DNA from: Tubulanus polymorphus
Taxonomy: Eukaryota > Animalia > Nemertea
Reading direction: 5' to 3'
Length of the DNA stretch: 64,000 nucleotides
NCBI RefSeq assembly: GCF_964204645.1
Contig: NC_134032.1
Coordinates: 620,001 to 684,000 of the forward strand
This document shows, piece after piece, positions 6,109-64,000 of the stretch (the stretch's first letter is position 1; each line of letters opens with the position of its first letter). The notes beneath the pieces are model-generated. The model did not search any database. It was given only the letters and a program-made list of their open reading frames with translations, and was not told the DNA's origin. A program made the position numbers and the translations under genes.

Positions 6109-9100
6109 ATGAATTACGTCGGTAAATTGCTGTCGAATTTCAAGGGTTTCTACAGCGAGATCAACTCGGCGACGTTAACCGGCGCGATCGACACGGTCGT
6201 CGTTGAACAGGATGACGGATCGTTCGTTTGTTCGCCGTTCCACGTCCGCTTCGGTAAAATGGGCGTGTTACGATCGCGCGAGAAGAGGGTAAGTCGAATT
6301 CCGCATTCCGAACGCGATTTTATAACGTTTTTGAAAACTATTAAATGTATATTAAAATATATATATATATATATATTTAAAATTATATTAAAAGCTATTG
6401 AAAATGCTATATTTTTTATTTTTTTTGGAAAGGATTGATTAGTTTTTGCCGAATAAATCCTATACAAATTTTTCATGTCATCGAAATTCAATACTTCAGT
6501 TATTAAACCTCGCCTAACTCTGGCAAACTGGAACCGGCAAAATCGGTCTTGAGTTGACGGTAACAAGTTAAATCCCCCCAAATTTGATTTTGTAGCAAAA
6601 TTCAGTGAAATGCTTCCAATTATTGAAAACTTAAAATCTTTCAAAAATTTCAAATTTTGTTTTTGAAAATATTCACCTTGGATAATCTGTGACTTAACGA
6701 AGCAACGCGCTCAAAGATGACATTATTCTGTAACCGTTAGCCAGCGAAATGATATAATAGTAGTTTTGAAGAGTTCTATGAAAAAATCTAGTTAAATAGT
6801 TATAGTAAAATATCTATGTACCCTAGATATAATATTGTAAATATTAATATCTGTTTTCATATAGGTTTTATACTTGAGTTTGATAGAAAACTGATTTTTG
6901 GGGGTTTATTACCTAGGGGGTAATTACCGGGGGGTAATTAACTACATTGGAATTGGGCCTTACAGGGTACTTATGATTCCTTGATTCCTTGAAAACTGCT
7001 TCTAAACCAAAAATGTTTTTAAATGTCCTTTCATTTGAGCAAAATTCCCGATGGCCTTTGAAGACTGCTTGAATTCTTCGAAGTAGACAGTTAGAAAATT
7101 GTTAGAAAAAGGTTTACTGTAACCTCATTGAGAGTTTGATTTTCCAAAAAAAGGTTAAATTGTCTTTAAATTGCTCATCGAAAATGAACTGATATTCCCT
7201 GGGTATATCCCAGTGTTGTATTAAGCGCCATCTGGTGTTGCCGGTATTCCATTCACTAGTATGACATCACTCGTAGCACGCCCTCTGGTGGCAGTTCGAT
7301 CGTTGAATTGATTTTTTTGCTATGCGATCGATTTCAGGTTGAGATTACAGTTAACGGCACTCCCGTCGATCTGCATATGAAACTAGGCGATTCCGGCGAG
7401 GCTTTTTTCGTACAGGAATGCGATGAACAATCTGAGGTAAGAGCCTACTGAGAAACCTACTGTACCTACTCCTACTGAGAACCTAGCGTACCTACTGAAA
7501 TAGGGGTCATTCATTTATTACGTACGCATTAGGGGAGGGGGAGAAGGATCAGTGCAGTTGCGTACTGTAATGCTTAATGTATATGAAAAAATGGCCGATT
7601 TTGCGTACAGAGGGGGAGGGGGGTTGAAAAATTTAAATTTTATGCGTACGTAATAAATGAATGATCCCATAGCATTTCGATAATTCTATGATTTCATTTA
7701 TTACTATTGTTAAGCGCTATGATTATCTTGTAAACAAATTATTATTATTATATTATATTATTATTATCATAATTATTATTATTATTATTATTATGAATGT
7801 ACTGAACCTACTGAACCTACCATACCTACTGCAATCTATAATATTCCGTAGGTTTTTCTTGATTTGTTTCTTTAAAATCCCGGCTAAATTGAGGAATCCA
7901 AGCCTCTTGAATTCTCTGAGAAATTTTTGCTGAGTTTAAAAGTCGACCCGGCCAGTCGTCTATCTGTACATTAATTTAAAAAAGAAAATTATAATCAACC
8001 TAACCTTACAATAACAACAATGGGCCTAGTTATAGAAATGAACTGATTACAAATTTCATTGCTGATTACAAAATGACCCGGCCGATTAGGCGAAACAAGG
8101 TATCATTTATTAATCTAAACCTAAAGGCCTAATATTTTGAGAATCCTTCGATATAATGAAAGATAGATTCAGTCTAACTGTTGTACGTTCATCCCTCAGA
8201 GTTGGTCATTTTATCACCAATTTCGTGTGGTCAACACTATCAAAGTTTGGAAACCTTTCAAATCAATTGACTTCAGGTTCATGATATGATGATAGGCCTT
8301 CTAAGAAATGTGTGCTTAGAATAGTGCGTTACGGCCTGATGCTTGTTTAGACTATAAATGTCTGTCTAGGTTAAACAGGTTTTTTAATTTAGATTCTGTC
8401 GGTTTTGGTATAAAAATTTGTACGTAATATTCCACCTACAACTAACACTAAAATATTATAACGATTTACAAGCTGTGACAACAACGCACAAAATAATTCA
8501 ACCTCCCACGAATAATGAATTTAGTCGGTTTTAAATATTCATTCGCGCGTATAAACCGTGTTTAACGTTTAAAAACATGTGTCACTCGTTCTCTGTCGGC
8601 AGGGATTTCATGAGTGTTTAACCCATCAGTTCTCAATCCACCCTGACTATTACTCCTCAAGCCGCCCGTATCCACCCTCACTATTACTCCTCAATCCACC
8701 TGTATCCACCCTGACTATTACTCCTCAATCCACCTGTATCCACCCTGACTATTACTCCTCAATCCACCTGTATCCACCCTGACTATTACTCCTCAATCCA
8801 CCTGTATCCACCCTGACTATTACTCCTCAAGCCGCCCGTATCCACCCTCACTATTACTCCTCAATCCACCTGTATCCACCCTCACTATTACTCCTCAATC
8901 CACCCTGACTATTACTCCTCAATCCACTTGTATCCACCCTGACTATTACTCCTCAATCCACTTGTATCCACCCTGACTATTACTCCTCAATCCACCTGTA
9001 TCCACCCTGACTATTACTCCTCAATCCACCTGTATCCACCCTGACGATTACTCCTCAATCCACTTGTATCCACCCTGACTATTACTCCTCAATCCACCTG

Positions 9101-10931
9101 TATCCACCCTCACTATTACTCCTCAATCCACCTGTATCCACCCTGACTATTACTCCTCAATCCACCTGTATCCACCCTGACTATTACTCCTCAAGCCGCC
9201 CGTATCCACCCTGACTATTACTCCTCAATCCACCTGTATCCACCCTGACTATTACTCCTCAATCCACTTGTATCCACCCTGACTATTACTCCTCAAGCCG
9301 CCCGTATCCACCCTGACTATTACTCCTCAATCCACCTGTATCCACCCTCACTATTACTCCTCAATCCACCTGTATCCACCCTGACTATTACTCCTCAAGC
9401 CGCCCGTATCCACCCTGACTATTACTCCTCAATCCACCTGTATCCACCCTGACTATTACTCATCAATCCACCTGTATCCACCCTGACTATTACTCCTCAA
9501 TCCACCTGTATCCACCCTGACTATTACTCCTCAATCCACTTGTATCCACCCTGACTATTACTCCTCAAGCCGCCCGTATCCACCCTGACTATTACTCCTC
9601 AAGCTGCCCGTATCCACCCTGACTGTTACTCCTCAATCCACCTGTATCCACCCTGACTATTACTCCTCAATCAGTGCTAATCAATACCCGTATAGTGCTG
9701 GAGATAATTTGAAAATTTTGAATAATTCCACCCTAGTGTGTTTAATAAAGGGAATACCGCTATAGTGCGTTGTTAGTTACTAATATTTCACCATGTTTGA
9801 AAGGTGCTGCCATCTTTCAAGAGAGATTATTACTAATTACATCAATACACCGCAGTGTGATGTACTAGGAAAATACATCACTGATTAATACACCGCACTG
9901 TCGTGTAGACGTACTGAAAGGGTTAACACTATTCACTTCTCTACAATTTATCGAGTTAACCCTGCCCTTCTGACTAAATGCTAACTGCTGCTCAAAACCT
10001 TATTCAATTGCGCCCAATTTTCTATTTCCAGTTTCCTGATAACCTGGCGACGTCTCCCCTACCGTCGGTGGAGGAACTCATGCAACAAGGCATCGCTGAT
10101 TTACACAAACAATCGAACCGTCGTGAAGCGAGAGATCGGGCGAGCACGTCGGGCACCGATCACACCACCGGGTCGAGTAACATCGATAACGAGTCTGATT
10201 TCTATTTACCTCCGCCGGTAATAGAGGGCGCCGGCGTTCGCGAACGCACCGAATCGGAGCGAAGCAGCACGTCGACGTTGCCGTCGCGTAAGAACTCGGA
10301 CACGCCGCCGGTCGCCGCGGACGCGTCGTCGACGACCAGGCGCACGCGGACGGAATCAGAGCGAGTCGGAGCCAACGAGATCGGTGCGGCGAGTTTAAAA
10401 CGGTCGTACTCGACGCCCGAGTTGAACGACGCGTCGTTTAAACCGATCGAGACGGAGGAGTCGTACAGCGGTCGCGACGGCTCGGCCGTGCTCGTCTCGA
10501 AACCGCTGGCCATCTCGCCGAAACATATCCCGCTGACGTCGTCGTCGGACTGCGGCGTCGCGCGGCGCGAGACCACGACGAACGAAGACGACGCCGCCGC
10601 CACTAAGAAGAAGAAAAAGAAGAAAGGCAGCTTGAAGAAGAGGCATAAAGCGCGTCAGAATTCGAGCGCGACCGATTCCAGTTCGGCGGCGAGCCACGTC
10701 GTGAATACGGCCACCGACGCCGAAATCATATTCAACATGGACGACGACGAAGACGGCAGTTCGGACGCAGCGGCGGCCGCGGCGGTTAATGCTATACCGC
10801 GTACGACCAGTCTACCGATCATCGAAGAGAATCGTATGGAAATGACGAACGACTGGGCGCGGACTCAGTTCGCGGCGCAGTTTCATCCGTTCTCGGACGG
10901 AGATATCACTCCTATTGTCAGGTATTTATTA

Positions 10932-10964
<33 letters not shown>

Positions 10965-13900
10965 GATAGACCACTGAAAATTTTCCTTTAATTGTTAGCT
11001 TCCACGAGGAGTATTCTGTGGAGTCAATTTGAGTCATTTTTTGTTTCAGTCCGGTCGGGTCAAGGCCGCCGTCGCCGAAATCCGACACGGAGGTCGAGTG
11101 TAAGAAGATAGAATCGGATCCGTCTGGTCAGGAGCAAGACGACGTGAAGTGGATGTGGGGCGAACTTCCCGAAATAGACCGCAACAACAAAACAAAAGAA
11201 TCGGCGACAGAAATGAAAAAAACAGGTGCGAGTTATACCATCTCCTCGCTTGCCAGGGGTCGGGTATCACTTCCTGAACAGGTTTGCGCCCCCTTGCCTC
11301 ACGACGTGTGATTTCATTTCTGGCTACTTGCGAAATACTTCCTTGTTTGGTAAGACGTTTGCTGATTGGTCCATTTCACGGGAAAACCAACATAAGCCTG
11401 ATTTTGTTTGTTACAAGCGCTGTGATTGGTTACGTCCGGATTCTGGTCGGCTAGTAACGACTGCAACGACTCGTGAGGTCAAGGGGTTCGGGGAACAGCT
11501 TCAGCGTATCGGGTTCGAATCCCTTGTTGATGGAGTTATGCCCGCAGATAAACTTGAAGTAGGATATCTAGATCGATGATTATCCATTTCAGAGGTGGAA
11601 AACGCCGGAGGTTTGTTTCATTTCATGCGCAAAACTAAGAAACTACGACATCAACCGGAACAGGAGGGAATTTATTTAGAAGATCTGAAACTTGATGAGA
11701 TGGACCCTGAAGTCGCTGCACTTTATCTATACAACCCAAAGAGGTATTTATTGTTTATTTTATTTATTATTTTTTTAGTTAAATTTAAAACCGACTGAAC
11801 TAGCGACACCTGCTGGTAGCCACAGAAGCTGTAGTTGGTGTCCTACTGCACACTAGCGACACGTGGTGGATCCTCACTTGCCACAAGTGGAATCCTCTAT
11901 AAACTGACCGGATAAATGTCTGTTTGTATTTCAGCTCAGTCGTGTCTCACCCTCAACACGTGGATGAAGACAATGAATCGGGCCGCGGCGCGTCCTTGCC
12001 GCAGTCACCCGTATCAGTAGAGGGCACCACTAGTATCGAACTGTCTCACAAATCATCACTTGAAGATAGCGGGTGAGTAATCACTGTCAGTGCTGGAGAT
12101 AATTTGAAAATTTGAAAAAATTCCACCCTAGTGTGTCGAATAACGGGAATAGCACTATAGTGCGTCTACACCGCGGTGCAGTGTATCATTAGTTACTAGT
12201 ATTTCACTATGTTTGACAGGTGCTGCCATTTTTCAAGAGAGATAATTACTAATTACATCAATTCACCGCAGTGCGGTGTACTTGCAAAATCTATCACCGA
12301 TTTATACACCGCACTGCGGTGTAGACGCACTGAAAGGGTTAATTGAGAGAAATAGACGATTAGAAATGTTTTTCTAGTTTGCAGTTGTACATAAGTATAC
12401 AGTGTACTAGCAAAATCTATCACCGATTTATACACCGCACTGCGGTGTAGACGCACTGAAAGGGTTAAATGCCTTGAAATCATGCAATTATATCAGCGTG
12501 CGTAACATTTATCACATTCAATATTTCTGTCGTTTCTAGTGAACATTTGTCGGATATGAAGATGTCTATATGCGGCGGACTCAAGGAACACGAAGGTGAA
12601 TTCCCCAGCGAACGGTTCATGCAAGGTTTAATTACGTACGACGATTTCTGTCAGAACCCGGGCATCTTAACGAACCCGGACCTCGTCATTAAACTCGCTG
12701 ACAAGTAAGTGTTTCTGTACGGTAAATAAGATAAGAACCCTACTGCGTACAAATTAAAAGAATTTTAAAATCGAGAATTTATTTATGGTGAGATCGAAGC
12801 GTTGTGTCATTAAGATTTCTGAATAAACAAATTCTCGATTTTAACCTAGTGGGTTTTCATCTTATTTTTCCGCTCTTCACGTTTCGAGTCTGGTTATTGT
12901 ACTGTTTCTGTACGGTATTCCTAGGCGTCTTACGAGAGAGTTCTGTAAGATAGTCAAAATTAGTTTTAAGGCTCTTCGTTTTTCAAAGCCGCCACAATTT
13001 CAGCGGTGAAGCATCGAAAACAGGCGATTTCTGTCAAACAAGGGCACAACTTTGTCCTACGAAGTTCGGGCAATGTTTAAGCGGACTCACAGAATGAACT
13101 TAATTAATTTGCCTAAAGTATTTAGTAAAGACCTCTCGGGGATCTAGCCCCTGGATATTTTTGTGCGTGATAGGAATTGTATTTACTCGACAATTAGGTT
13201 CAACGTTAGAAATACATTCCCAAGAAATACACTAGTCTCTTAGTCGTGTGTTAAATCGTTTTTTTGTATATATTTTGCAGGTATTACAACTGGCAAGTCG
13301 CTGGTCCTATCGTAATGTCTGTTCTAGCGTTCCAAAAACCGCTTCCGGAGGTTCGTATTTTTTTGGCAATTATAGATGATCATTCATTCTCGGCTTCTTG
13401 CATAGAATTCAACTACTTCAATTTGTCTAGTTATTTTTGATGAATAATGATAGCAGTAGTAAAAGTATCTTGATGGTTTACAAACTTTGAAGAACTGCAT
13501 TTGGAAAACGCACTTCTTCGCGCGTTGCTGTGTCGAATTAACGGGTGTTCGTGATTTCTGCCTTTAGAAAAATCAACTGAAAAAGCCTGGGTCCTGAAAC
13601 TGCCCCTTAGGGGAAATATCCGTAAATGATGCAATTTCTGAGAGGATCAGTTTGCGGCAGGTTTTAAAATGATTTCTGTCTCGGCGTCAAAGGGGGGCAT
13701 CCTCTATGATGACGAGGCAGGATTCTAGACCCCAGAAAAATACCCCGTCGATATAGATCCGTCTGTGAGTCCTTGTACACGCGTGCTGTTGTGATTGGGC
13801 GATAAAGGCTGATATTAACTTTCTCTACTCCAGTTGATGCTTGATAAATTAAATGTCTGTTATTTGCTTGCGTTTCAGCACATAATCAACGATCTTCTGA

Positions 13901-44367: not shown

Positions 44368-45322
44368 ATGAATTCTTCTCAAATGCAGATTGGTCGACCT
44401 TATTCCAGTTACATCATCCTCATGTCTGTATCGAACAAGTCAGGAATCTACCGTACCGTGTCACTGGTAATTCTGCTAATCTTATTCCAGTTAGGAGCCT
44501 TCGGCAATTCGGCTACTTTCCTGATTATGATAAGTCGCAGATTCCGCAGTTTATCTTACGCTAACTATCTGCTTATTCTATCGGTCAGCGATTTTGTGGT
44601 CTACGTCAATCTAGTTCTGATGCCTGTTTTACAGTTTGTTCTCTTGCGCGTAAACTTCGGTCCGATATTCGTTATAAACTCCCTGATCGGTTGCCAAATC
44701 TACGAATTTGTAATGTTACTTTTCGGCTGCCAATAGTTCGTGGTTGATAGTAGCGATATCTCTAGAACGCGCGGCGGTTGTTCTCTTCCCGTTCACATCT
44801 CGTTTGGTTTGCACGCATAGATTCGCTAGATTCGCTATATTGATAATTACCGCAGTGAATGTCCTCGTCCTGTATCTCACGCCAGCTTTGTCGTTACATT
44901 TCTCCGACCAGTTTTTCGGATGTTACTACGAATTGTTGGACCAGTTAAAATATTTCTCCATCAGTACTATTTACATTAACACATTACCGTTAACCTTGAT
45001 TGTTTTAGCGAATTCTCTGATAATAATTCAGTTGTTCAGAGGCTCGAAAATGGTTTCGTCCGATCAGAAAACTACGAAATCAAAACGTACGACAATAATG
45101 CTCGTAACAGTTTCACTCGCATTTGCAATGTTTAAAAGTCCAACTATAATTACCGTATTTTTACCAATCTCGACAGAACAGAGACAGTTTCTGTTGGACC
45201 TTTTCACGCAGTTTCAATTGTGCAACTATTCAATAAACTTCTACATATATCTTTTACTGGGACGAGAAATTCGTGAATATTTCTGTATGAAAATCCGCTG
45301 TGGTAGAAATTCTGGCAAATAA
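44368..45322 (+). pseudogene. Intronless class-A (rhodopsin-like) GPCR with one frameshift (~317 aa if repaired)
   Basis: TM1 GAFGN, TM2 LSVSD, CQIYEF, then in the next frame SSWLIVAISLERA (DRY equivalent), TM5 LPLTLIVLAN, TM7 NYSINFYIY, helix 8 EIRE. Removing one T from 44720-44723 fuses ORFs 44368-44736 and 44744-45322. Confidence 0.85.
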
Positions 45323-50321: not shown

Positions 50322-52695
50322 CTAAATGGGGGGAGTAAATAAAGTGTTTATATCATAAAATCCCAGTGATGCCTGATTATTGCTGTTATCCCAGTGATAG
50401 ATAACTACAGCGTTACTGCCACACACTTTATGTATCTCAAATGTTAAACTGTCTGTAGAGTTCAGTATTATACGCCCGGGGGGATTTATAAACCCGTGGT
50501 CATTATATCTTATACTGATAACAGCACCTCTGTTACCAGTATCAGAGTATACCGATATCAATACATGATCATCATTAATAACACACGGGTGTCCCCCCAA
50601 TGGAATTAGTCCAGAATCCTTTATATTAATGAAACTAATCAGTTCTGCTTCTGCTGTTAGATATATCAATCTATGAGTCATGTGACAGTAAATGAACATA
50701 CGTCCCCGTGTATCGACATCTAAAGAGTTGAATGAGTAACCTCCATCTGGGAGTTGATATTTCTTCATTCGATTTCTATCAATTATTTTACCTACAGGGT
50801 TTTCTCGTAAAGGTAAAACATGAACGTCACTATCTCCTGACTGTATATAGATAATGTGATCACGGATCACTAAGGATCCACAGCCTCCAGACATGAGATC
50901 AGTGATATTTTCTTCGAAGAGTTTTATCTCATTTTTATATTTTCTCAGGTAGAATTCACTGTTTTTCCACACGACCACAAACAGAAACCCGTTATTATCA
51001 GTATCGAGTCCTTGTATCGAACCATCAATCTCTATGTATCTCTGTATATTATCATCATTCACACTATATATATAATCAGTCGAGCACCACTCCGCACATA
51101 TAGCACGTGACTGTTCACCCTCGTGTTCACCGGGTATTGACGTCATCAGGTGGGGTCTGAAATCTGTATCTACCCGTTTATTGACCGTCAATGAATCGAT
51201 TATTCCTACACGTAGCCGCGTGACGTCATCGATACATCCCTCCAGTTTATCAATTCTCCCTATGACGTCCTCAGTAGATCGTTCCGCTCTTTCCATTCTC
51301 TCTATGACATCATCAACAGATCCCTCCACATTTCCAATTCTCTCTTTGACGTCATCAGTAGATCTTTCCACTTTATATTTTCTCCGTATGAAGTCATCAT
51401 TGATATTAGTCATTTTTGTCTCCAATGCTTTAAGTTGTTGTTCAGTACAGAACCGGTTCAGCCTTTCTTCAAGTTGTTGTTCAGTACAGCATTGGTTCAG
51501 CCTCTCTTCAAGTTGTTGTTCAGTACAGAACCGGTTCAGCCTCTCTTCAAGTTGTTGTTCAGTACAGAACCGGTTCAGCCTCTCTTCAACTGTTTCTATA
51601 TTGTGTTTCAATTGACAGAATTGATTTTCTAAATTATCGTGAAACTGTCTGACATGTTCTATAAAAGAACTATGTCGTTCATCAATGTCTGATCGAACTG
51701 TTCGGGTTTCACTGATTGGCACACCTACTGAATTTACTTTATACAAATTATGTGCAGATGTCTGGTTTGAAGCGATCACATGAAGCCCCGACACTAATGA
51801 ATGCGGGGCTTGTTGAAGATGTGTTTTTAAGTTTCGCGCTGTTTCATCGTCTGAGCATTTAACGATAAACACATGAATCGCTGGACAGTGATTAAACCCG
51901 ATATGATGATTCGGTATCTCTACACCAGGGGGCGCTTCTCTCCATTCTAGTTTCACCTGGAATTGAAAAATATAGTTATATTAAGGGTGAAACTTAAGGG
52001 GGGGTTGCTGATACAATTTCATCGAAACTTATTGCAGCTCGAGCGCTGTAGGCATGGACGGGGGAGGCGGAGGTCTAACCCCCAGAAAGTTTTTGGAATT
52101 TTGCTGCTTTTAAAAATGCAATCTCGGAACAGTAACGGAACCCGGTTGGCTTCATGGTGTAGTAAATAAGACATAAGATACGATCAGGGTGGAATTTTTC
52201 CGGGGGAGAGGGGTGCACCAACTGCACCTGCCACCTCCCCCCACCCTACGGGCCTGAAATTGTTTGAGACTAAAATTGTTGGATTCTTGATATTCGTATT
52301 CTGTGAGTCGGGGTCTGGGTTTGGTAACGTTATAGGCCTATTATCAACTCTAAATTTTTATTCAACATTCAAGTAAAGAAATCAGATATTTCTATCGGGG
52401 TCGGAACGATGTTTACCTCGTCAAACGGCATCATTTGTACATTTATAACTTGTTCCGTATAGATCGATTTCAGTTCACATATTATGTGGTTCTCTAATTC
52501 TTCTGTCCACATCTGTATCGGTAGTTGTAATTGATCACCAGCAGTAGCGATCAGATCACATTCTAAATCGAACAACGGTTGAAAGTAATAATTCTGTATT
52601 GTTCTGTAGTCGTTGTCGTGATCCGACCAAACACCGATCTTGCGACCACGATAAGAAACTGCGAGCTCGAATCTGTACGTGGAATTAGACGCCAT
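50322..52695 (-). CDS. Array gene copy 1: N-terminal domain + 13-aa repeat/coiled coil + NHL-like beta-propeller, 637 aa
   Basis: Exon 1 52695-52417 (93 aa, GAG|GTAAAC donor); exon 2 51956-50322 (TTCCAG|GTG acceptor, phase 0). The ORF-track start at 51956 is a spliced Val codon. Confidence 0.88.
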
Positions 52696-54731
52696 GTTGT
52701 CGGTGGGCGGTTTTCTCACTGTAGATTGTGCAGGCGTGACCTCCTCACGCGCGCGGGTCTCACGCGTCTTGCCATAAAGTTAAAACCACACGGCACTGAT
52801 AACACGAAACAGCGATACAAATACAATACTTATCAAATGATGAATAGACATGCTTTGAGATCGCTTGTTCTGAACGGTGTCTCCTGGTGAGCAGGAGAAC
52901 CTCTCTTCCAGTGTCGACGCGGTTCCTAACGTGATACCGGCAAGGCTACTGTGCGAAGCGAGGATTCATTGATGATCCATAGGTGTCGCTAAGTGGTACG
53001 GGGTTTCCGCTATTCAATGTCCTCGCACATTTTTTTTATTCGAGTAGACTTTTCCGATTATTAAAATCAATTTTTAGTTAAATGAATACCATACCCTCCT
53101 GAACAAAATCTCAAGTAGAATACCCTGTAATAAATTCGAGTCCGTTTGTCGTTTGGGCTGACTATACCAGGAAATATATAGTGGACTTCCGGAGCTTTCT
53201 CGGTAACTGATTGCTGTTTATGCTCGCTGTTGACTGAACTCACCTGACCAGTTTATTTTAGATGTCACATATCCCAGGGACAATAACTGATTATAACTTA
53301 TCCATGAGGCTTCTCTCGAGAATTGGCTGCTTAGACAAGTGAACCGATTAGGATACTTAGGTCGGGTTTAGGCTTTAAAACCGACACAGATTGGAACATC
53401 GTTACAGCAAACAGTACTCCGTATACCAAGTACGTTTTATCAAACGAGGTTAACGAAAATATAGATATCTACTTATTTTATTATATTATTATTATCATTA
53501 TTATTATTACGAGCTACAATTTTGCAATTGATTGGTGGTAACAATCTTCATTTTCTTAAATCAATCATATCAATCCGGGTTTCTAATGTGATAAAGAAAA
53601 ACCCATTAAAGCAGGTTTTTGCGGCACGTTTTTTACTGCGAGGCCGCATGTTCGATGTACTTAAGGGTTAAACGAATATGATACCTTGTTTCTCCGCACG
53701 GCCGGGTCATTTTTGAAAAATATGATAAAATTTATAACCAGCACATTCCTATAGCTGCCGGGTCTGTTACGGGTAAGATCGATCACGATTTCAAAAAAAA
53801 AAGTAATGTACAGGGTAGATAGGCGGCCAGCCGGGTCAACTTTACAGCTCAGCGGGGCGGAGAAACAAGGTATCAATTTTCTTTTTAGCCTAACTTCAAA
53901 TATTTTTTACAATTCTAGTTTATTTATAATTTCAATAAAGAATCATCTGACAAAGGTATACATTTCTAGCCTTAGTGAAAATATATTCTCTTCTGCGTCT
54001 TTTAATGTTAGTTTCATTAAAATCGATTGAAGTCAGTTTCGATACACTAGACCTGACCTAGTTGTCACTTAGTGGAAAAACTGGCGCGAATTTTTGGGCC
54101 GATCTTTCATCCTCGAGGGATCTATTAAAATAATAAACATTTAAATCCCCCATAATCGATCTATCGCTCTTGAACTACTGTCGTTCTAATAAAGGACAGT
54201 TCCATAACAAATTCACACTCGACCAAAATTGAGTCCAATTTAAACAATTTTCTCTAATTCAAGACGCTTAGGCGCTACATCCTAGCAGGCGCATAGCGCG
54301 CTTCGACAAAACGCAATCCGTGCATTTCGACTAAACTCTCTTTGAGACCGAACCGATATCGGATAACATAAAATTACAGGTCTGGTCTGGCGTTAGCGCA
54401 AGCGTCTGAAATTGGGCACCCTATATACCCTTCAAAATATGTATTTTACTTTGAAAAATATAGATAAATAGCTGAAGCACTGAATCCGGTGAATATTGTG
54501 GGGTCTGATCCCTTAACGACCTCCCCTGACCCCCAGGGGTAAAAGTTTTGATAGTAGCAGGTTTTTTTTCTGAAAGCCCATCTCGTGTTACATGAACCCG
54601 AGTTTGTTACCAATTTCTAACATTCGGCGCCTATAGAAGTATTTTATGATGCGTTTTGCCGGCGGACTACGAGTAGCATTTCATTGTATACACGTCGTTC
54701 TCGAACCCTAGAATCGGTTTAGACTTCGGTT

Positions 54732-57103
54732 CTAAATCGGGGGAGTTAATACAGTGTTTATATTGTAGAATCTCAGTGAGTTCTGATCATCACTGATATC
54801 ACGGTGATGGATAACTACAGTGTCACTGTTACACACGTGATGTATGTCACATGTCTCACTGTCTGTAGAGTTCAGTATTATACGCGGGTGATCTATAAAC
54901 CCCTCATCATTATATCTGATACTAATAACAGATCCTCTGTTACCAGTATTAGAGTATACCGATAGCAATACTTGATTATCATTAATGACACACGGGAATC
55001 CCATACATGGATCAAATGTCAGTCCGCAATCGTTCATAGTAATAAAACTGATCAATTCTGCTTCTGGTTTTAGATACAATAATCTGCGTGTACGCAAACA
55101 GTAGATAAATATACGTCCCCGCGTGTCGACATCGAAACCGTAGATATAAAAGTAATCTCCATCCGGGAGCTGATAGTTCTTCACTCGATTTCTATCGATC
55201 AATCTGTTTTCAGGGTTTTCTAATAAACGTAAAACATGAATTTCACTATCTCCTGTCTGTATAAAGATATTGTGATCACGGATTACGAAGGATCCACAGA
55301 CTCCAGGCAGGAGATCAGTGATATTTTCTTCGAAGAGTTTTTTCTGATTTTTATATTTTCTCAGGATGTATTCCCTGTTTTTCCTCACGACCACAAACAG
55401 AAACCCGTTACCATCAGCAGCGAGTCCATGTATCCAACCATCAATCTCTATGTATCCCTGTATATTATCATCATTCACACTATATATACAATTAGTGGAG
55501 CGATACTGCGCACATATAACACGTGACTGTTCACCCTCGTGTTCACCGGGTATTGACGTCACCATGTTGAGTACGAAATCTGTATCTACCTGTTTATTGA
55601 CCGTCAATGAATCGATTAATTCTACACGTAGCCGCGTGACGTCATCGATATATCCCTCCAGTTTATCAATTCTCCCTATGACGTCCTCAGTAGATCGCTC
55701 CGCTCTATCCATTCTCTCTATGACATCATCAACAGATCCCTCCACATTTCCAATTCTCTCTTTGACGTCATCAGTAGATCTTTCCACTTTATAATTTCTC
55801 CGTATGACGTCATCATTGATATTAGTCAGTTTTGTCTCCAATGCTTTAAGTTGCTGTTCAGTACAGCATTGATTCAGCCTCTCTTCAAGTTGTTGTTCAG
55901 TACAGAACCGGTTCAGCCTCTCTTCAAGTTGTTGTTCAGTACAGAACCGGTTCTGCCTCTCTTCAAGTTGTTGTTCAGTACAGAACCGGTTCTGCCTCTC
56001 TTCAACTATTTCTATAGTGTGTTTCAATTGACAGAATTGATTTTCTAGATTATCGTGAAACTGTCTGACATGTTCTATAAAAGACCGATGTCGTTCATCA
56101 ATGTCTGATCGAACTGTTCGGGTTTCACTGATCGACACACCTACTGAATTTACTTTATACAAATTATGTGCCTGATTTGAAGCGATCACATGAAGCCCCG
56201 ACACTAATGAATGCGGGGCTTGTTGAAGATGTGTTTTTAAGTTCCGCGCTGTTTCGTCGTCTGAGCATTTAACGATAAACACATGAATCGCTGGACAGTG
56301 ATTAAACCCGATATGATGATTCGGTATCTCTACACCAGGGGGCGCTTCTCTCCATTCTAATTTCACCTGAAATTGAAAAATATAGTTATATTAAGGGTGA
56401 AACTTAAGGGGGGGGGGGGTTGCTGATACAATTTCATCGGAACTTATTGCAGCTCGAGCGCTGTAGGCATGGACGGGCGAGGCGGAGGTCTAACCCCCAG
56501 AAAGTTTTTGGAATTTTGCTGCTTTTAAAAATTATTTCCTGCAATCTCGGAACAGTAACGGAACTCGGTTGGCTTCATGTCGTAGTAAATAAGATAAAAG
56601 ATACGATCAGGGTGGAATTTTTCCGGGGGGAGAGGGGTGCACCAACTGCACCTGCCCCCCCCCACCTACGGGCCTGAAATTGTTTGCTGTACGAGACTAG
56701 AATTGTTGGATTCTTGATATTCGTATTCTGCGAATCGGGGTCTGGGTTTGGTATATTATTCAACATTCAAGTAAAGAAATCAGACATATATATTTCTATC
56801 GGGTCCGAACGATGTATTGTTTACCTCGTCAAACGGCATCATTTGTACATTTATAACTTGTTCCGTATAGATCGCTTTCAGTTTTACTTCGATAATAGTC
56901 TCTAATTCTTCTGTCCACATCTGTATCGGTAGTTGTAATTGATTACCAGCAGTAGCGATCAGATCACATTCTAAATCGAACAACGGTTGAAAGTAATAAT
57001 TCTGTATTGTTCTGTAGTCGTTGTCGTGATCCGACCAAACACCGATCTTGCGACCACGATAAGAAACTGCGAGCTCGAATCTGTACGTAGAATTAGACGC
57101 CAT
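54732..57103 (-). CDS. Array gene copy 2, 637 aa
   Basis: Exon 1 57103-56825 and exon 2 56366-54732; intact. Confidence 0.88.
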
Positions 57104-59050
57104 GTTGTTTTTGGGCGTTTTCTAACTGTAGATTGTGCAGGCGTGACCTCCTCACGCGCGCGGGTCTCACGCGTCTTGCCATAAAGTTAAAACCACACGG
57201 CACTGATAACACGAAACAGCGATACAAATACAATACTCATCAAATGATGAATAGACATGCTTTGAGATCGCTTGTTCTGAACGGTGTCTCCTGGTGAGCA
57301 GGAGAACCTCTCTTCCAGTGTCGACGCGGTTCCTAACGTGATACCGGCAAGGCTACTGTGCGAAGCGAGGATTCATTGATGATCCATAGGTGTCGCTAAG
57401 TGGTACGGGGTTTCCGCTATTCAATGTCCTCGCACATTTTTTTTATTCGAGTAGACTTTTACGATTATTAAATCAATTTTTAGTTAAATGAATACCATAC
57501 CCTCCTGAACAAAATCTCAAGTAGAATACCCTGTAGTAAATTCGAGTCCGTTTGTCGTTTGGGCTGACTATACCAGGAAATATATAGTGGACTTCGGAGC
57601 TTTCTCGGTAACTGATTGCTGTTAATGCTTGCTGTTGACTGAACTCACCTGACCAGTATATTTTAGATGTCACATATCCCAGGGACAATAACTGATTATA
57701 ACTTATCCATGAGGCTTCTCTCGAGAATTGGCTGGTTAGACAAGTGAACCGATTAGGATACTTAGGTCGGGTTTAGGCTTTAAAACCGACACAGATTGGA
57801 ACATCGTTACAGCAAACAGTACTCCGTATACCAAGTACGTTTTATCAAACGAGGTTAACGAAAATATAGATATCTACTTATTTTATTATATTATTATTAT
57901 CATTATTATTATTACGAGCTACAATTTTGCAATTGATTGGTGGTAACAATCTTCATTTTCTTAAATCAATCATATCAATCCGGGTTTCTAATGTGATAAA
58001 GAAAAACCCATTAAAGCAGGTTTTTTGCGGCACGTTTTTTACTGCGAGGCCGCATGTTCGATGTACTTAAGGGTTAAACGAATATGATACCTTGTTTCTC
58101 CGCAGCGGCCGGGTCATTTTTGTAAAATATGATAAAATTTATAACCAGCACATTCCTATAGCTGCCGGGTCTGTTACGGGTAAGATCGATCACGATTTCA
58201 AAAAAAAAAGTAATGTACAGGGTAGATAGGCGGCCAGCCGGGTCAACTTTACAGCTCAGCGGGGCGGAGAAACAAAGTATACATTTCTAGCCTTAGTGAA
58301 AATATATTCTCTGTTGCGTCTTTTAATGTTAGTTTCATTAAAATCGATTGAAGTCAGTTTCGATACACTAGACCTGACCTAGTTGTCACTTAGTGGAAAA
58401 ACTGGCGCGAATTTTTGGGCCGATCTTTCATCCTCGAGGGATCTATTAAAATAGTAAACATTTAAATCCCCCATAATCGATCTATCGCTCTTGAACTACT
58501 GTCGTTCTGATAAAGGACAGTTCCATAAAAAATTCACACTCGACCAAAATTGAGTCCAATTTAAACAATTTTCTCTAATTCAAGACGCTTAGGCGCTACA
58601 TCCTAGCAGGCGCATAGCGCGCTTCGACAAAACGCAATCCGTGCATTTCGACTAAACTCTCTTTGAGACTGAACCGATATCGGATAACATAAAATTACAG
58701 GTCTGGTCTGGCGTTAGCGCAAGCGTCTGAAATTGGGCACCCTATATACCCTTAAAAATATGTATTTTACTTTGAAAAATATAGATAAAAAGCTGAAGCA
58801 CTGAATCCGGTGAATATTGTGGGGTCTGATCCCTTAACGACCTCCCCTCACCCCCAGGGGTAAAAGTTTTGATAGTAACAGGTTTTTTTTCTGAAAGCCC
58901 ATCTCGTGTTACATGAACCCGAATTTGTTACCAATTTCTAACATTCGGCGCCTATAGAAGTATTTTTATGCGTTTTGCCGGCTGACTACGAGTAGCATTT
59001 CATTGTATACACGTCGTTCTCGAACCCTAGAATCGGTTTAGACTTCGGTT

Positions 59051-61410
59051 CTAAATCGGGGGAGTTAATACAGTGTTTATATTGTAGAATCTCAGTGACT
59101 CCTGATCATCACTGTTATCCCAGTGTCGGATAGCTACAGTGTTACTGTTTAACACGTGATGTATGTCACCTGTCTCACTGTCTGTAGAGTTCAGTATTAT
59201 ACGCGGGTGATCTATAAACCCCTGATTATTATATCTGATACTGATAACAGCACCTCTGTTAACAAAGGAATCAGAGCATACCGATAGTAATATACGATCA
59301 TCATTAATAACACACGGGTGTCCTGCACATGGATTAAATTCTAGTGCACAATCGTTCATATTGATAAAACTAATCTCGTTCGCATCTGCTGTTAGAAACA
59401 GTAATCTATGAGTCGTTTCACAGTAAAGAAACATCCGTCCCTTTGAATCGACATCGAAACAGTTGATATTACCGTAATCTCCATCCGGGAGCTGATACTC
59501 CTTCACTCGGGTTCTATCAATCAAACTGTTTTCAGGGTTTTCTAATAAACCTAAAACATGAACTCTTCCCCGTGACTGTATAAAGATATTGTGTTCACGA
59601 ATCACTAAGGATCCACAGCCTCCAGGCAGGAGATCAGTGATTTCTTCTTCCAACAGTTTTTCACAATTTTTATATTTTCTAAGGTAGAATTTCCTATTTT
59701 TTTTTACGAGCGCAAACAGATCCCCGTTACTATCAGTAGCGAGTCCTTTTACGCCACCGCCATCAATCTTTATGTATCTATCAAATTCATCATCATAATC
59801 AAAATCATCGTCATCATCATAATCATCGTCATCATTCACACTATATATATAATCAGTCGAGCACCACTCCGCACATATAACACGTGACTGTTCACCCACA
59901 TGTTCACCAGGTAGTGACGTAATCAGGTCGGGTGTGAAGTCTGTATCTACCTGTTTATTGACCGTCAATGAATCGATTATTCCTACACGTAGCCGCGTGA
60001 CGTCATCAATATGTATCTCTAATTCATCAATTCTCCTTTTGACATCATCAGTAATTTTGGATAGTTTTGCCCCCATATCATCATTGATATTGGTCAGTTT
60101 TTCCTCAAGTTGTTGTTCAGTACAGCACCGGTTCAGCCTGATCTCTTCAAGTTGCTGTTCAGTACAGAACCGGTTCAGCCTCTCTTCAAGTTGTTGCTCA
60201 GTGCAGAACCGGTTCAGCCTCTCTTCAAGTTGTTGTTCAGTGCAGCACCGGTTCAGCCTCTCTTCAAGTTGTTGTTCAGTGCAGCACCGGTTCAGCTTCT
60301 CTTCAACTGTTTCTATATTGTGTTTCAATTGACAGAATTGATTTTCTAGATTATCGTGAAACTGTCTGACATGTTCTATAAAAGAACTATGTCGTTCATC
60401 AATGTCTGATCGAACTGTTCGGGTTTCACTGATCGACACACCTACTGAATTTACTTTATACAAATTATGTGCAGATGCCTGGTTTGAAGCGATCACATGA
60501 AGCCCCGACACTAATGAATGCGGGGCTTGTTGAAGATGTGTTTTTAAGTTTTGCGCTGTTTCATCGTCTGAGCATTTAATAATAAACACATGAATCGCTG
60601 GACAGTGATTAAACCCGATATGATGATTCGGTATCTCTACACCAGGGGGCGCTTCTCTCCATTCTAGTTTCACCTGGAATTGAAAAATATAGTTATATTA
60701 AGGGTGAAACTTAAGGGGGGGGGGGGTGCTGATACAATTTTCATCTGATTTATTGCAGCTCGAGCGCTGTAGGCATGATCGGGGAGGCGGAGGTTTAACC
60801 CCCAGAAAGGTTTTAGAATTTTGCTGCTTTTAAAAATGATTTCCTGCAATCTCGGAACAGTAACGGAACTCGGTTGGCTTCATGCCGTAGTAAATAAGAC
60901 ATAAGATACGATCAGGGTGGAATTTTTCCGGGGGGAGAGGGGTGCACCAACTGCACCTGCCCCCCCCCCCACCTACGGAACTGAAATTGTTTGCTGTACG
61001 AGACTAGAATTGTTGGATTCTTGATATTCGTATTCTGCGAATCGGGGTCTGGGTTTGGTATATTATTCAACATTCAAGTAAAGAAATCAGACATATATAT
61101 TTCTATCGGGTCCGAACGATGTATTGTTTACCTCGTCAAACGGCATCATTTGTACATTTATAACTTGTTCCGTATAGATCGCTTTCAGTTTTACTTCGAT
61201 AATAGTCTCTAATTCTTCTGTCCACATCTGTATCGGTAGTTGTAATTGATCACCAGCAGTAGCGATCAGATCACATTCTAAATCGAACAACGGTTGAAAG
61301 TAATAATTCTGTATTGTTCTGTAGTCGTTGTCGTGATCCGACCAAACACCGATCTTGCGACCACGATAAGAAACTGCGAGCTCGAATCTGTACGTAGAAT
61401 TAGACGCCAT
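59051..61410 (-). CDS. Array gene copy 3, 633 aa
   Basis: Exon 1 61410-61132 and exon 2 60673-59051; intact, with all indels relative to copies 1 and 2 in frame. Confidence 0.88.
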
Positions 61411-63358
61411 GTTGTTTTTGGGCGTTTTCTAACTGTAGATTGTGCAGGCGTGACCTCCTCACGCGCGCGGGTCTCACGCGTCTTGCCATAAAGTTAAAAC
61501 CACACGGCACTGATAACACGAAACAGCGATACAAATACAATACTCATCAAATGATGAATAGACATGCTTTGAGATCGCTTGTTCTGAACGGTGTCTCCTG
61601 GTGAGCAGGAGAACCTCTCTTCCAGTGTCGACGCGGTTCCTAACGTGATACCGGCAAGGCTACTGTGCGAAGCGAGGATTCATTGATGATCCATAGGTGT
61701 CGCTAAGTGGTACGGGGTTTCCGCTATTCAATGTCCTCCCACATTTTTTTTATTCGAGTAGACTTTTACGATTATTAAATCAATTTTTAGTTAAATGAAT
61801 ACCATACCCTCCTGAACAAAATCTCAAGTAGAATACCCTGTAGTAAATTCGAGTCCGTTTGTCGTTTGGGCTGACTATACCAGGAAATATATAGTGGACT
61901 TCGGAGCTTTCTCGGTAACTGATTGCTGTTAATGCTTGCTGTTGACTGAACTCACCTGACCAGTATATTTTAGATGTCACATATCCCAGGGACAATAACT
62001 GATTATAACTTATCCATGAGGCTTCTCTCGAGAATTGGCTGGTTAGACAAGTGAACCGATTAGGATACTTAGGTCGGGTTTAGGCTTTAAAACCGACACA
62101 GATTGGAACATCGTTACAGCAAACAGTACTCCGTATACCAAGTACGTTTTATCAAACGAGGTTAACGAAAATATAGATATCTACTTATTTTATTATATTA
62201 TTATTATCATTATTATTATTACGAGCTACAATTTTGCAATTGATTGGTGGTAACAATCTTCATTTTCTTAAATCAATCATATCAATCCGGGTTTCTAATG
62301 TGATAAAGAAAAACCCATTAAAGCAGGTTTTTTGCGGCACGTTTTTTACTGCGAGGCCGCATGTTCGGTGAACTTTAGGGTTAAACGAATATGATACCTT
62401 GTTTCTCCGCACGGCCGGGTCATTTTTGTAAAATATGATAACATTTATAACCAGCACATTCCTATAGCTGACGGGTCTGTTACGGGTAAGATCGATCACG
62501 ATTTGAAAAAAAACGTATTAATGTATAGGGTAGATAGGCGGCCAGCCGGGTCAACTTTACAGCTCAGCGGGGCGGAGAAACAAAGTATACATTTCTAGCC
62601 TTAGTTAAAATATATTCTCTTCTGCGTCTTTTAATGTTAGTTTCATTAAAATCGATTGAAGTCAGTTTCGATACACTAGACCTGACCTAGTTGTCACTTA
62701 GTGGAAAAACTGGCGCGAATTTTAGGGCCGATTTTTCATCCTCGAGGGATCTATTAAAATAATAAACATTTAAATCCCCCATAATCGATCTATCGCTCTA
62801 GAACTACTGTCGTTCTAATAAAGGACAGTTCCATAAAAAATTCACACTCGACCAAAATTGAGTCCAATTTAAACAATTTTCTCTAATTCAAGACGCTTAG
62901 GCGCTACATCCTAGCAGGCGCATAGCGCGCTTCGACAAAACGCAATCCGTGCATTTCGACTAAACTCTCTTTGAGACTGAACCGATATCGGATAACATAA
63001 AATTACAGGTCTGGTCTGGCGTTAGCGCGAGCGTCTGAAATTGGGCACCCTATATACCCTTAAAAATATGTATTTTACTTTGAAAAATATAGATAAAAAG
63101 CTGAAGCACTGAATCCGGTGAATATTGTGGGGTCTGATCCCTTAACGACCTCCCCTGACCCCCAGGGGTAAAAGTTTTGATAGTAACAGGTTTTTTTTCT
63201 GAAAGCCCATCTCGTGTTACATGAACCCGAGTTTGTTACCAATTTCTAACATTCGGCGCCTATAGAAGTATTTTTATGCGTTTTGCCGGCTGACTACGAG
63301 TAGCATTTCATTGTATACACGTCGTTCTCGAACTCTAGAATCGGTTTAGACTTCGGTT

Positions 63359-64000
63359 CTAAATCGGGGGAGTTAATACAGTGTTTATATTGTAGAATCT
63401 CAGTGAGTTCTGATCATCACTGATATCACGGTGATGGATAACTACAGTGTCACTGTTACACACGTGATGTATGTCACATGTCTCACTGTCTGTAGAGTTC
63501 AGTATTATACGCGGGTGATCTATAAACCCCTCATCATTATATCTGATACTAATAACAGATCCTCTGTTACCAGTATTAGAGTATACCGATAGCAATACTT
63601 GATTATCATTAATGACACACGGGAATCCCATACATGGATCAAATGTCAGTCCGCAATCGTTCATAGTAATAAAACTGATCAATTCTGCTTCTGGTTTTAG
63701 ATACAATAATCTGCGTGTACGCAAACAGTAGATAAATATACGTCCCCGCGTGTCGACATCGAAACCGTAGATATAAAAGTAATCTCCATCCGGGAGCTGA
63801 TAGTTCTTCACTCGATTTCTATCGATCAATCTGTTTTCAGGGTTTTCTAATAAACGTAAAACATGAATTTCACTATCTCCTGTCTGTATAAAGATATTGT
63901 GATCACGGATTACGAAGGATCCACAGACTCCAGGCAGGAGATCAGTGATATTTTCTTCGAAGAGTTTTTTCTGATTTTTATATTTTCTCAGGATGTATTC
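63359..64000 (-). CDS. Array gene copy 4 (3' part only; cut by the window edge)
   Basis: The visible part appears identical to the 3' end of copy 2. Confidence 0.85.
   Translation of the reverse strand, partial: EYILRKYKNQKKLFEENITDLLPGVCGSFVIRDHNIFIQTGDSEIHVLRLLENPENRLIDRNRVKNYQLPDGDYFYIYGFDVDTRGRIFIYCLRTRRLLYLKPEAELISFITMNDCGLTFDPCMGFPCVINDNQVLLSVYSNTGNRGSVISIRYNDEGFIDHPRIILNSTDSETCDIHHVCNSDTVVIHHRDISDDQNSLRFYNINTVLTPPI

Follow-up and report, generated by a model that had tools for sequence, protein, structure and literature searches.

A tandem gene array of the nemertean Tubulanus polymorphus retains, reshuffles and positively selects a predicted NHL-like propeller between homogenised flanks

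We analysed a 64,000-nucleotide stretch of the genome of the nemertean Tubulanus polymorphus (C8:620001-684000 in a 268-Mb assembly, contig NC_134032.1; hereafter the window), the end of which holds a tandem array of genes that join a constant N-terminal part to a variable C-terminal domain. C8 coordinates are those of the chromosome, and all other positions are those of the window. Our main finding is that the array unit evolves in concert while its C-terminal domain, a predicted beta-propeller, is retained, reshuffled among paralogues and positively selected on one face; we hold this evolutionary description with high confidence. Evolution and function taken together, we think it fairly probable that the genes belong to a lineage-specific multigene family of T. 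polymorphus serving immune-type recognition.

A direct repeat with a period of 4308-4410 nt runs across 50.3-64 kb of the window, with its genes on the minus strand. The window contains 3.15 units, and the whole array comprises ten head-to-tail copies (C8:670325-712070). An initial annotation, made from the letters of the window, had recognised at least four head-to-tail units, three of them complete with intact two-exon genes, and this description extends to the full array: all ten copies carry two intact exons with their splice sites and encode products of 625-655 amino acids. Each unit consists of an exon 1 of 93 codons (MASNSTYRF...MMPFDE), a GT-AG intron of 447-470 nt and an exon 2 of 532-562 codons. 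Units 2 and 4 encode the database protein P0004, with which the splice agrees, as it does with the RefSeq models P0002 and P0003. We used P0004 for the full-length analyses and joined exon translations only for a local hydropathy scan. Hydropathy over 19 residues peaks at 1.0 in the array copies, and their N-terminus is hydrophilic, which gives no sign of a transmembrane helix or signal peptide; likewise, none of about 40 paralogues and RefSeq models begins with a signal peptide or a hydrophobic stretch. A Pfam search with all exons and full-length P0004 gave nothing above threshold, with no RING, no B-box and no P-loop nucleoside triphosphatase (NTPase; NACHT or NB-ARC). The absence of signal peptide, transmembrane helix, RING and B-box noted in the initial annotation is thus upheld by both searches.

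Sequence divergence is distributed very unevenly within the unit. Among the units of the window, the upstream spacer and exon 1 are mostly 96-100% identical (one block of exon 1 in unit 1 is 88% identical), the intron 91-98% and the first ~120 codons of exon 2 93-99%, with the propeller-coding part at 76-92%. Across units 1-9, identity is 97-100% in the 2-kb spacers and 95-100% in exon 1, in the intron and at the start of exon 2. It is 86-100% in the stalk that precedes the propeller and 81-97% in the propeller DNA, except for units 2 and 4, which are 100% identical there. The mean difference is 1.5% for the spacer and 3.4% for the intron; propeller DNA differs by 3-19%, and this divergence ceases no more than about 60 nt from the stop codon. 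Compared as proteins, the C-terminal domains of the three complete copies in the window are 67-70% identical, in line with the earlier estimate that the last ~300 residues differ at a quarter to a third of positions beside near-identical spacers, introns and N-terminal parts. All indels between window units are in frame, also as first described. Half of the propeller codons are invariant; others hold 5-9 different residues. Dispersed paralogues show the usual pattern, with conserved coding DNA and unrelated flanks.

The initial annotation had stressed that coding DNA is more diverged than the adjacent non-coding DNA. This stands for the propeller, but silent sites are diverged too: at fourfold sites within propeller codons whose amino acid is invariant, the mean difference is 9.3%, about 6 times that of the spacer. 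The contrast between coding DNA and spacer is therefore not a matter of amino-acid change alone, and the propeller segments must be either older lineages or imported. Two repeats lie in the spacer. One, of ~230 bp (~53666-53894), is interspersed in the genome in more than 30 copies that are 83-90% identical, and next to it about 70 nt are missing from some units; the other, of ~420 bp (~52992-53412), has an identity of about 75%. We considered that the spacer might be a mobile element and rejected this, as the whole spacer occurs only in the array and just the ~230-bp and ~420-bp pieces are interspersed. Since it is confined to the array and contains old interspersed repeats, the spacer is ordinary non-coding DNA. 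These results show that the array evolves in concert, its spacers, exon 1, intron and N-domain being homogenised by unequal exchange or conversion, and that the propeller segment escapes homogenisation and holds old sequence lineages.

The propellers are also mosaics. In a Sawyer-type run test, 35 of the 153 propeller pairs share identical tracts longer than expected (p < 0.01). Nearest neighbours switch along the domain; unit 10, for example, has unit 7 as its neighbour at first and then, successively, units 5, 7 and 9. Some tracts are common to the array and to copies 450 kb away, and to caspase-fused genes described below. Short tracts of the propeller are thus reshuffled between paralogues, whether these belong to the array or not.

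We modelled the last 303 residues with AlphaFold (AF2) from an alignment of 40 paralogues. The model has a mean predicted local distance difference test score (pLDDT) of 90.9 and 24 strands, corresponding to six four-stranded blades. The top Foldseek matches are the NHL domains of Brat and Mei-P26, with template-modelling scores of 0.63-0.69. VIA-align gives Z scores of 23.7 for Mei-P26, 22.9 for Brat, 22.7 for NHL-2 and 21.8 for TRIM2, with about 250 residues aligned at about 3 A root-mean-square deviation, although other six-bladed folds, including unrelated enzymes, score just 1-3 units below the NHL domains. The neighbours of the propeller in a protein language model are NHL clusters (score 0.93), which we take as a lead only. 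At the sequence level, Pfam NHL (PF01436) has no match in the array exons at E <= 1, and the 40-sequence propeller profile, run against the PDB, found the TRIM3 NHL domain only at a non-significant E of 0.64; the N-domain profile and the stalk likewise had no significant sequence match in the PDB. On the strength of the predicted structure and its top matches, we confidently assign the C-terminal domain to the six-bladed NHL-like beta-propellers, as the blade motifs had first suggested.

To quantify selection on the propeller, we used our own implementation of the M0, M1a and M2a codon models, in which six segments each had their own tree so as to accommodate recombination. By Nei-Gojobori counts, the ratio of nonsynonymous to synonymous change (omega) is about 0.8 for the whole propeller domain and 0.1-0.5 for the constant part. 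For 18 distinct propellers (9 from the array, 4 dispersed and 5 caspase-fused), M0 omega is 1.31 and M2a improves on M1a by 267 (twice the log-likelihood difference), with 20% of sites at omega 6.1. The nine distinct array copies alone give an M0 omega of 1.21 and an improvement of 143, with 12% of sites at omega 9.1. When data simulated under M1a on six different trees were analysed with one tree (M0 not fitted), the statistic reached at most 21. The statistic is therefore raised by recombination, but the observed values are larger than this can explain.

The selected sites lie mostly on one side of the domain. We assigned the 24 strands to blades, the N-terminal strand closing blade 6, such that the D-A and B-C loops lie on one face (top) and the A-B and C-D loops on the other (bottom). 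With the 18 propellers, 37 sites have a posterior of at least 0.95; these include 11 of 54 top-loop positions compared to 3 of 49 bottom-loop positions, and 19 of 87 top-proximal strand positions compared to 4 of 88 bottom-proximal ones. By face halves, 30 of 141 versus 7 of 137 positions are selected (Fisher p = 7e-5), and the array alone gives 14 of 144 versus 3 of 141 (p = 0.01). Chemically, selected sites accommodate a very mixed set of residues; one of them, for example, holds A/E/G/K/L/R/S/V/W. Nei-Gojobori omega by a-priori loop class is 1.14 for top loops, 0.91 for strands and 0.64 for bottom loops with overlapping intervals; taken alone, this comparison falls short of significance, which was reached only when the site model was combined with face halves. 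The variable motifs first listed in the initial annotation (RPHLM, AEWC, SIQG, CHMTH and others) fall in top-face positions. Its proposal that changes cluster in top-face loops of the ligand-binding type holds for the face, but many selected sites lie at strand ends, so "confined to loops" is too strong. These data show strong positive selection on some 12-20% of the propeller codons, most of them on the face of the D-A and B-C loops, and the diversifying selection proposed earlier is confirmed by a site class with omega 6-9 that exceeds the recombination nulls.

The first ~170 residues form an alpha/beta N-domain (model pLDDT 87.4). An exhaustive HMMER search with a profile of the paralogue N-domains found 32 proteins, and the weak matches among them have the motifs YFYxP, MWxE and VQVMPxxEV in common, in alignments of ~130-150 residues; the N-domain is a real conserved domain. 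Its model has a template-modelling score of 0.59 to nameless bacterial proteins in the ESM Atlas, where a feature search gave no usable match. No death-fold or TRADD-N protein is among its best 50 fold matches and neither has a Pfam match, which speaks against all but a very remote relation. The stalk that follows, putatively helical, is built of two kinds of tandem repeat, one of 39 nt (13 amino acids) and one of 42 nt (14 amino acids), and the number of 13-residue repeats varies from 3 to 5 among the ten copies. Compared with coiled-coil families in Pfam and coiled-coil chains in the PDB, it gives weak, sub-threshold matches only. The architecture of constant N-terminal module, stalk and variable head that the initial annotation outlined is thus made concrete as domain, 13/14-residue repeats and propeller. 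Two distant invertebrate relatives of the N-domain, L047:225-2701 (a contig of GCA_031546405.1) and L048:5001-6278, end in or are followed by C1q-like domains and are located among C1q genes.

With the ten copies of the array included, the genome contains about 42 intact propellers, most of which are adjoined by N-domain exons, and some 25 fragments with stops. On the chromosome of the array, at least five genes place the propeller before a complete caspase domain. In P0012, P0014 and P0015 the propeller occupies residues 1-300 and precedes a Peptidase_C14 match that covers the entire profile (1-233 of 233); in P0012 the motifs SHG and QACRG of the active site are readable by eye. Such proteins are caspases whose prodomain is sensor-like and takes the place of a CARD or DED. 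The caspase domain is not present in the array genes (P0004, Pfam). Further clusters of the family, at 50-65% identity, lie at C12:2.00-2.056 Mb, C12:6.19 and 6.33 Mb, C6:22.46-22.55 Mb and C11:8.50-8.51 Mb. Some of them have many more of the 13-residue stalk repeats, with open frames of up to 2257 amino acids on C11, and two near-duplicate blocks on C12 lie 146 kb apart. We found nothing in the literature on this family.

How might such a protein work? We suggest that the selected propeller face is a putative surface for binding ligands and keeps pace with targets that change fast, for instance molecules from pathogens or other non-self sources; that the stalk may make the protein multimeric; and that the constant N-domain would act as an assembly or signalling module passing on the binding event. 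Because paralogues place the same pool of propellers directly before a complete caspase, the output would likely be a cell-death or proteolytic defence response inside the cell. This functional reading, from ligand-binding face to intracellular output, is tentative, and we give it slightly less than even chances. A cytosolic location, as the initial annotation had it, would follow only from the absence of a signal peptide, and the effector role it gave the N-domain is putative.

Several observations weigh against this interpretation. The N-domain resembles no known fold (Foldseek against the PDB E > 0.02; best VIA-align Z 5.5, which is noise level) and fits no Pfam family, and its invariant residues P40, W63, F123 and C127 do not suggest a catalytic site. 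Neither a single protein nor the 40-sequence profile found propeller relatives outside T. polymorphus, so there is no comparative check. Our site-model code fixes relative branch lengths and models recombination just partly, and the faces were assigned from strand topology in the DSSP string and not from three-dimensional coordinates, making the face comparison a topological and not a spatial test. Aligned to unit 1, the contigs of four public runs that contain the stretch (one study, their kind not on record) showed no spliced joints, but they are short, break at paralogue differences and are too fragmented to be read for expression; a 2015 run that we guess to be RNA contains almost none of the words of the stretch. 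Finally, some distant N-domain relatives lie behind signal peptides or transmembrane helices and carry extracellular-type heads, so the module is not tied to the cytosol: the tardigrade protein XP_055351149 combines a transmembrane helix with a significant Xlink match, another relative has a C1q-like tail (weak, sub-threshold), and in one more a C1q open reading frame follows. The stalk repeats carry Cys or Cys-Cys and match the Galaxin repeat weakly (significantly in a long paralogue), which would suit an extracellular protein.

These last features are what one would expect if the array encoded a secreted, multimeric lectin- or toxin-like protein of mucus or proboscis, exported unconventionally, in which the propeller binds prey or microbial surfaces and the N-domain and Cys-bearing stalk merely bundle the heads. 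Nemerteans are venomous, and toxin families are often under selection of this kind. We nevertheless consider a secreted protein unlikely, given the lack of a signal peptide or hydrophobic N-terminus throughout the roughly 40 paralogues and RefSeq models, the fusion of the same propeller pool to caspases, which are intracellular proteases, and nearest structures that are intracellular TRIM-NHL domains. Those same structures raise the question of whether the genes encode RNA-binding regulators like Brat, Lin-41 and Mei-P26, with selection tracking RNA sequences, perhaps of transposons or viruses. The best matches are indeed RNA-binding NHL domains (Z 21-24), and such proteins bind RNA on the top face. 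On the other hand, unrelated six-bladed enzymes come within the 1-3 Z units noted above, there is no NHL match at the sequence level, the RING and B-box that define TRIM-NHL proteins are absent and residues at selected sites are mixed and not uniformly basic; a role in RNA binding is therefore quite improbable.

Alternatively, diversity itself could be favoured, through within-species recognition or genetic conflict (allorecognition, gamete or self-incompatibility, or a selfish toxin-antidote or drive system). Old propeller lineages standing side by side between homogenised flanks resemble balancing-type maintenance. The diversity we observe, however, is between paralogues of one assembly and not allelic, the proteins lack the membrane or secretion signal that cell-cell recognition would need, and we know of no colonial or fusion biology in T. 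polymorphus. The closest evolutionary parallel, het-d/het-e of Podospora, is an allorecognition system (PMC1805685). On balance we rank this explanation just behind a secreted protein, and it too is unlikely. It is very improbable that the array does nothing, being made of decaying 3' halves of recent duplicates or of a mis-assembled repeat that mixes haplotypes. An overall omega near 1 (0.8-1.3), 4.3-kb units that are 98-99% identical and hard to assemble, and the identity of units 2 and 4 could all be read in this way. Yet all ten copies keep their exons, splice sites and frame, and neutral change would leave all nine distinct copies free of stops with a probability of at most 2e-6; elsewhere in the genome, the family does have clearly broken fragments. 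The split between invariant codons and codons with 5-9 residues, and an advantage of M2a over M1a far beyond the recombination nulls, also speak against decay, and assembly errors would neither end within about 60 nt of the stop codon nor be biased to one face.

The locus is a clean natural example of two opposing forces at work within 4.3 kb: concerted evolution erases differences everywhere except in the putative binding domain, where they are kept and recombined by selection. To our knowledge, almost no immune receptors have been described in nemerteans, and the array would offer a candidate receptor repertoire without LRR, Ig, NACHT or B30.2 domains, as well as a new conserved N-terminal domain for comparative immunology. 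Caspases with a built-in variable sensor would be a direct, testable route from recognition to proteolysis. A bolder version, which we regard as doubtful, is that the N-domain is a new invertebrate signalling or death-effector module with interchangeable heads (NHL-like propeller, Xlink or C1q-like), and that one pool of propellers shuffled by gene conversion arms both N-domain receptors and sensor-bearing caspases, the latter being one-protein sensor-executioners in need of no NTPase or adaptor.

The features of the array and the propeller-caspase loci are collected in Table 1.

Table 1. Positions of array features within the window and of propeller-caspase loci on the chromosome (C8 coordinates).
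Feature	Position	Strand	Basis or remark
Unit 1 exon 2, 544 codons + stop; end of N-domain, repeat stalk, propeller; unit 1 is the array's last gene	50322..51956	-	ORF (open reading frame); AG acceptor 51957-51958
Unit 1 propeller-coding segment, 301 codons, most divergent copy	50325..51227	-	tblastn and locus mapping; DNA 81-87% identical to other copies
Unit 1 stalk: 42-nt (14-aa) repeats x4.3 at 51221-51399; 39-nt (13-aa, EERLNRFCTEQQL) repeats x4.2 at 51428-51589	51221..51589	-	Tandem Repeats Finder
Unit 1 intron, 460 nt, GT-AG	51957..52416	-	Sequence; donor and acceptor checked in all ten copies
Unit 1 exon 1, 93 codons, first half of N-domain	52417..52695	-	Splice agrees with P0004, P0002, P0003
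Spacer between units 2 and 1, non-coding, 97-100% identical among units; ~230-bp interspersed repeat at ~53666-53894	52696..54731	-	Unit comparison
Unit 2 exon 2; propeller part 54735-55643	54732..56366	-	ORF; product = P0004
Unit 2 exon 1	56825..57103	-	Splice check
Spacer between units 3 and 2	57104..59050	-	Unit comparison
Unit 3 exon 2; propeller part 59054-60004; acidic D/Y-rich insertion in blade 1, 28-aa stalk deletion	59051..60673	-	ORF, alignment
Unit 3 exon 1	61132..61410	-	Splice check
Spacer between units 4 and 3	61411..63358	-	Unit comparison
Unit 4, 3' part of exon 2, cut by window end; propeller identical to that of unit 2	63359..64000	-	Repeat and ORF
Propeller-caspase locus L025	C8:929674-930546		
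Propeller-caspase locus L023	C8:2265646-2266518		
Propeller-caspase locus L020	C8:2305571-2306455		
Propeller-caspase locus L027	C8:3083282-3084148		
Propeller-caspase locus L018	C8:3716494-3717363		

Individual units have peculiarities of their own. The acidic D/Y-rich insertion of unit 3 (59830-59900) is shared with unit 9, beyond the window; it is 8-13 residues long (DDYDDDDDFDYDDE) and lies in the C-D loop of blade 1, and both units also have the 28-residue stalk deletion. In unit 1, residues 69-78 (52462-52491) read ENHIICELKS, compared to ETIIEVKLKA in other copies, within an otherwise near-identical exon 1; in the N-domain model these residues belong to the first helix, and the patch resembles a short conversion tract. 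Elsewhere in the window, an exon of a rhodopsin-family G-protein-coupled receptor (44744-45322, plus strand; Pfam 7tm_1, E 2.7e-9) lies 5 kb from the edge of the array. A 34-bp tandem repeat at 8636-9672 has about 31 copies with a 92% match and a strongly C-rich plus strand (GC skew -0.45), and after it, at 9978-10991, comes a 337-residue open reading frame in a block of 51% GC with a sub-threshold AP3D1-like match.

The array can be compared with several known families. Fish finTRIM and primate TRIM5 genes are tandem duplicates in which the N-terminal part is constant and positive selection acts on surface loops of the C-terminal binding domain. There, however, the variable head is B30.2/SPRY, the constant part is RING, B-box and coiled coil, and there are no caspase-fused paralogues. 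TRIM-NHL proteins (Brat, Mei-P26, NHL-2, TRIM2/3/71) share with the array an N-terminal module, a stalk (helical, in the array putatively so) and a six-bladed NHL-type propeller, but the array proteins have no RING, B-box or Pfam NHL match, and conserved single-copy regulators stand on one side and a hypervariable array on the other. The initial annotation was right to set the array apart from them. A further comparison is with the lineage-specific DED-TRADD-N expansions of amphioxus and oyster, in which N-terminal modules of death or immunity type precede highly variable C-terminal propellers diversified by recombination (Kaur et al. 2021, PMC8195603). Both are marine invertebrate families of N-terminal module and variable propeller; those proteins carry WD40 propellers with DED plus TRADD-N, neither of which the array N-domain matches by Pfam or fold search, and the link of the array family to cell death runs through separate propeller-caspase paralogues.

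The NWD/HNWD genes of Podospora anserina (het-e, het-d, het-r) combine a constant N-terminal module with a propeller head, number about 10 or more, exchange propeller sequence within and between loci and are positively selected at a few interaction-face positions (PMC1805685, PMC2873952). The array resembles them in each of these respects: architecture, family size, propeller exchange and selection on a face of the propeller, in the array a putative interaction face. In contrast to their HET, NACHT and WD40 domains, the array genes have no NTPase, an NHL-like propeller and short repeats between the domains. Exchange in the array proceeds in short tracts of a whole six-blade domain and not in single-repeat units, and its genes stand in tandem with homogenised spacers, in an animal and not a fungus. 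Calling the system novel, as the initial annotation did, was thus an overstatement: its evolutionary logic is that of the fungal NWD/HET-E, amphioxus TRADD-N-propeller and finTRIM-type families, and the general principle is already known from fungi, fish and amphioxus. The locus lacks the domains that define fungal het-e/het-d, amphioxus TRADD-N and finTRIM-type families, and shares their logic.

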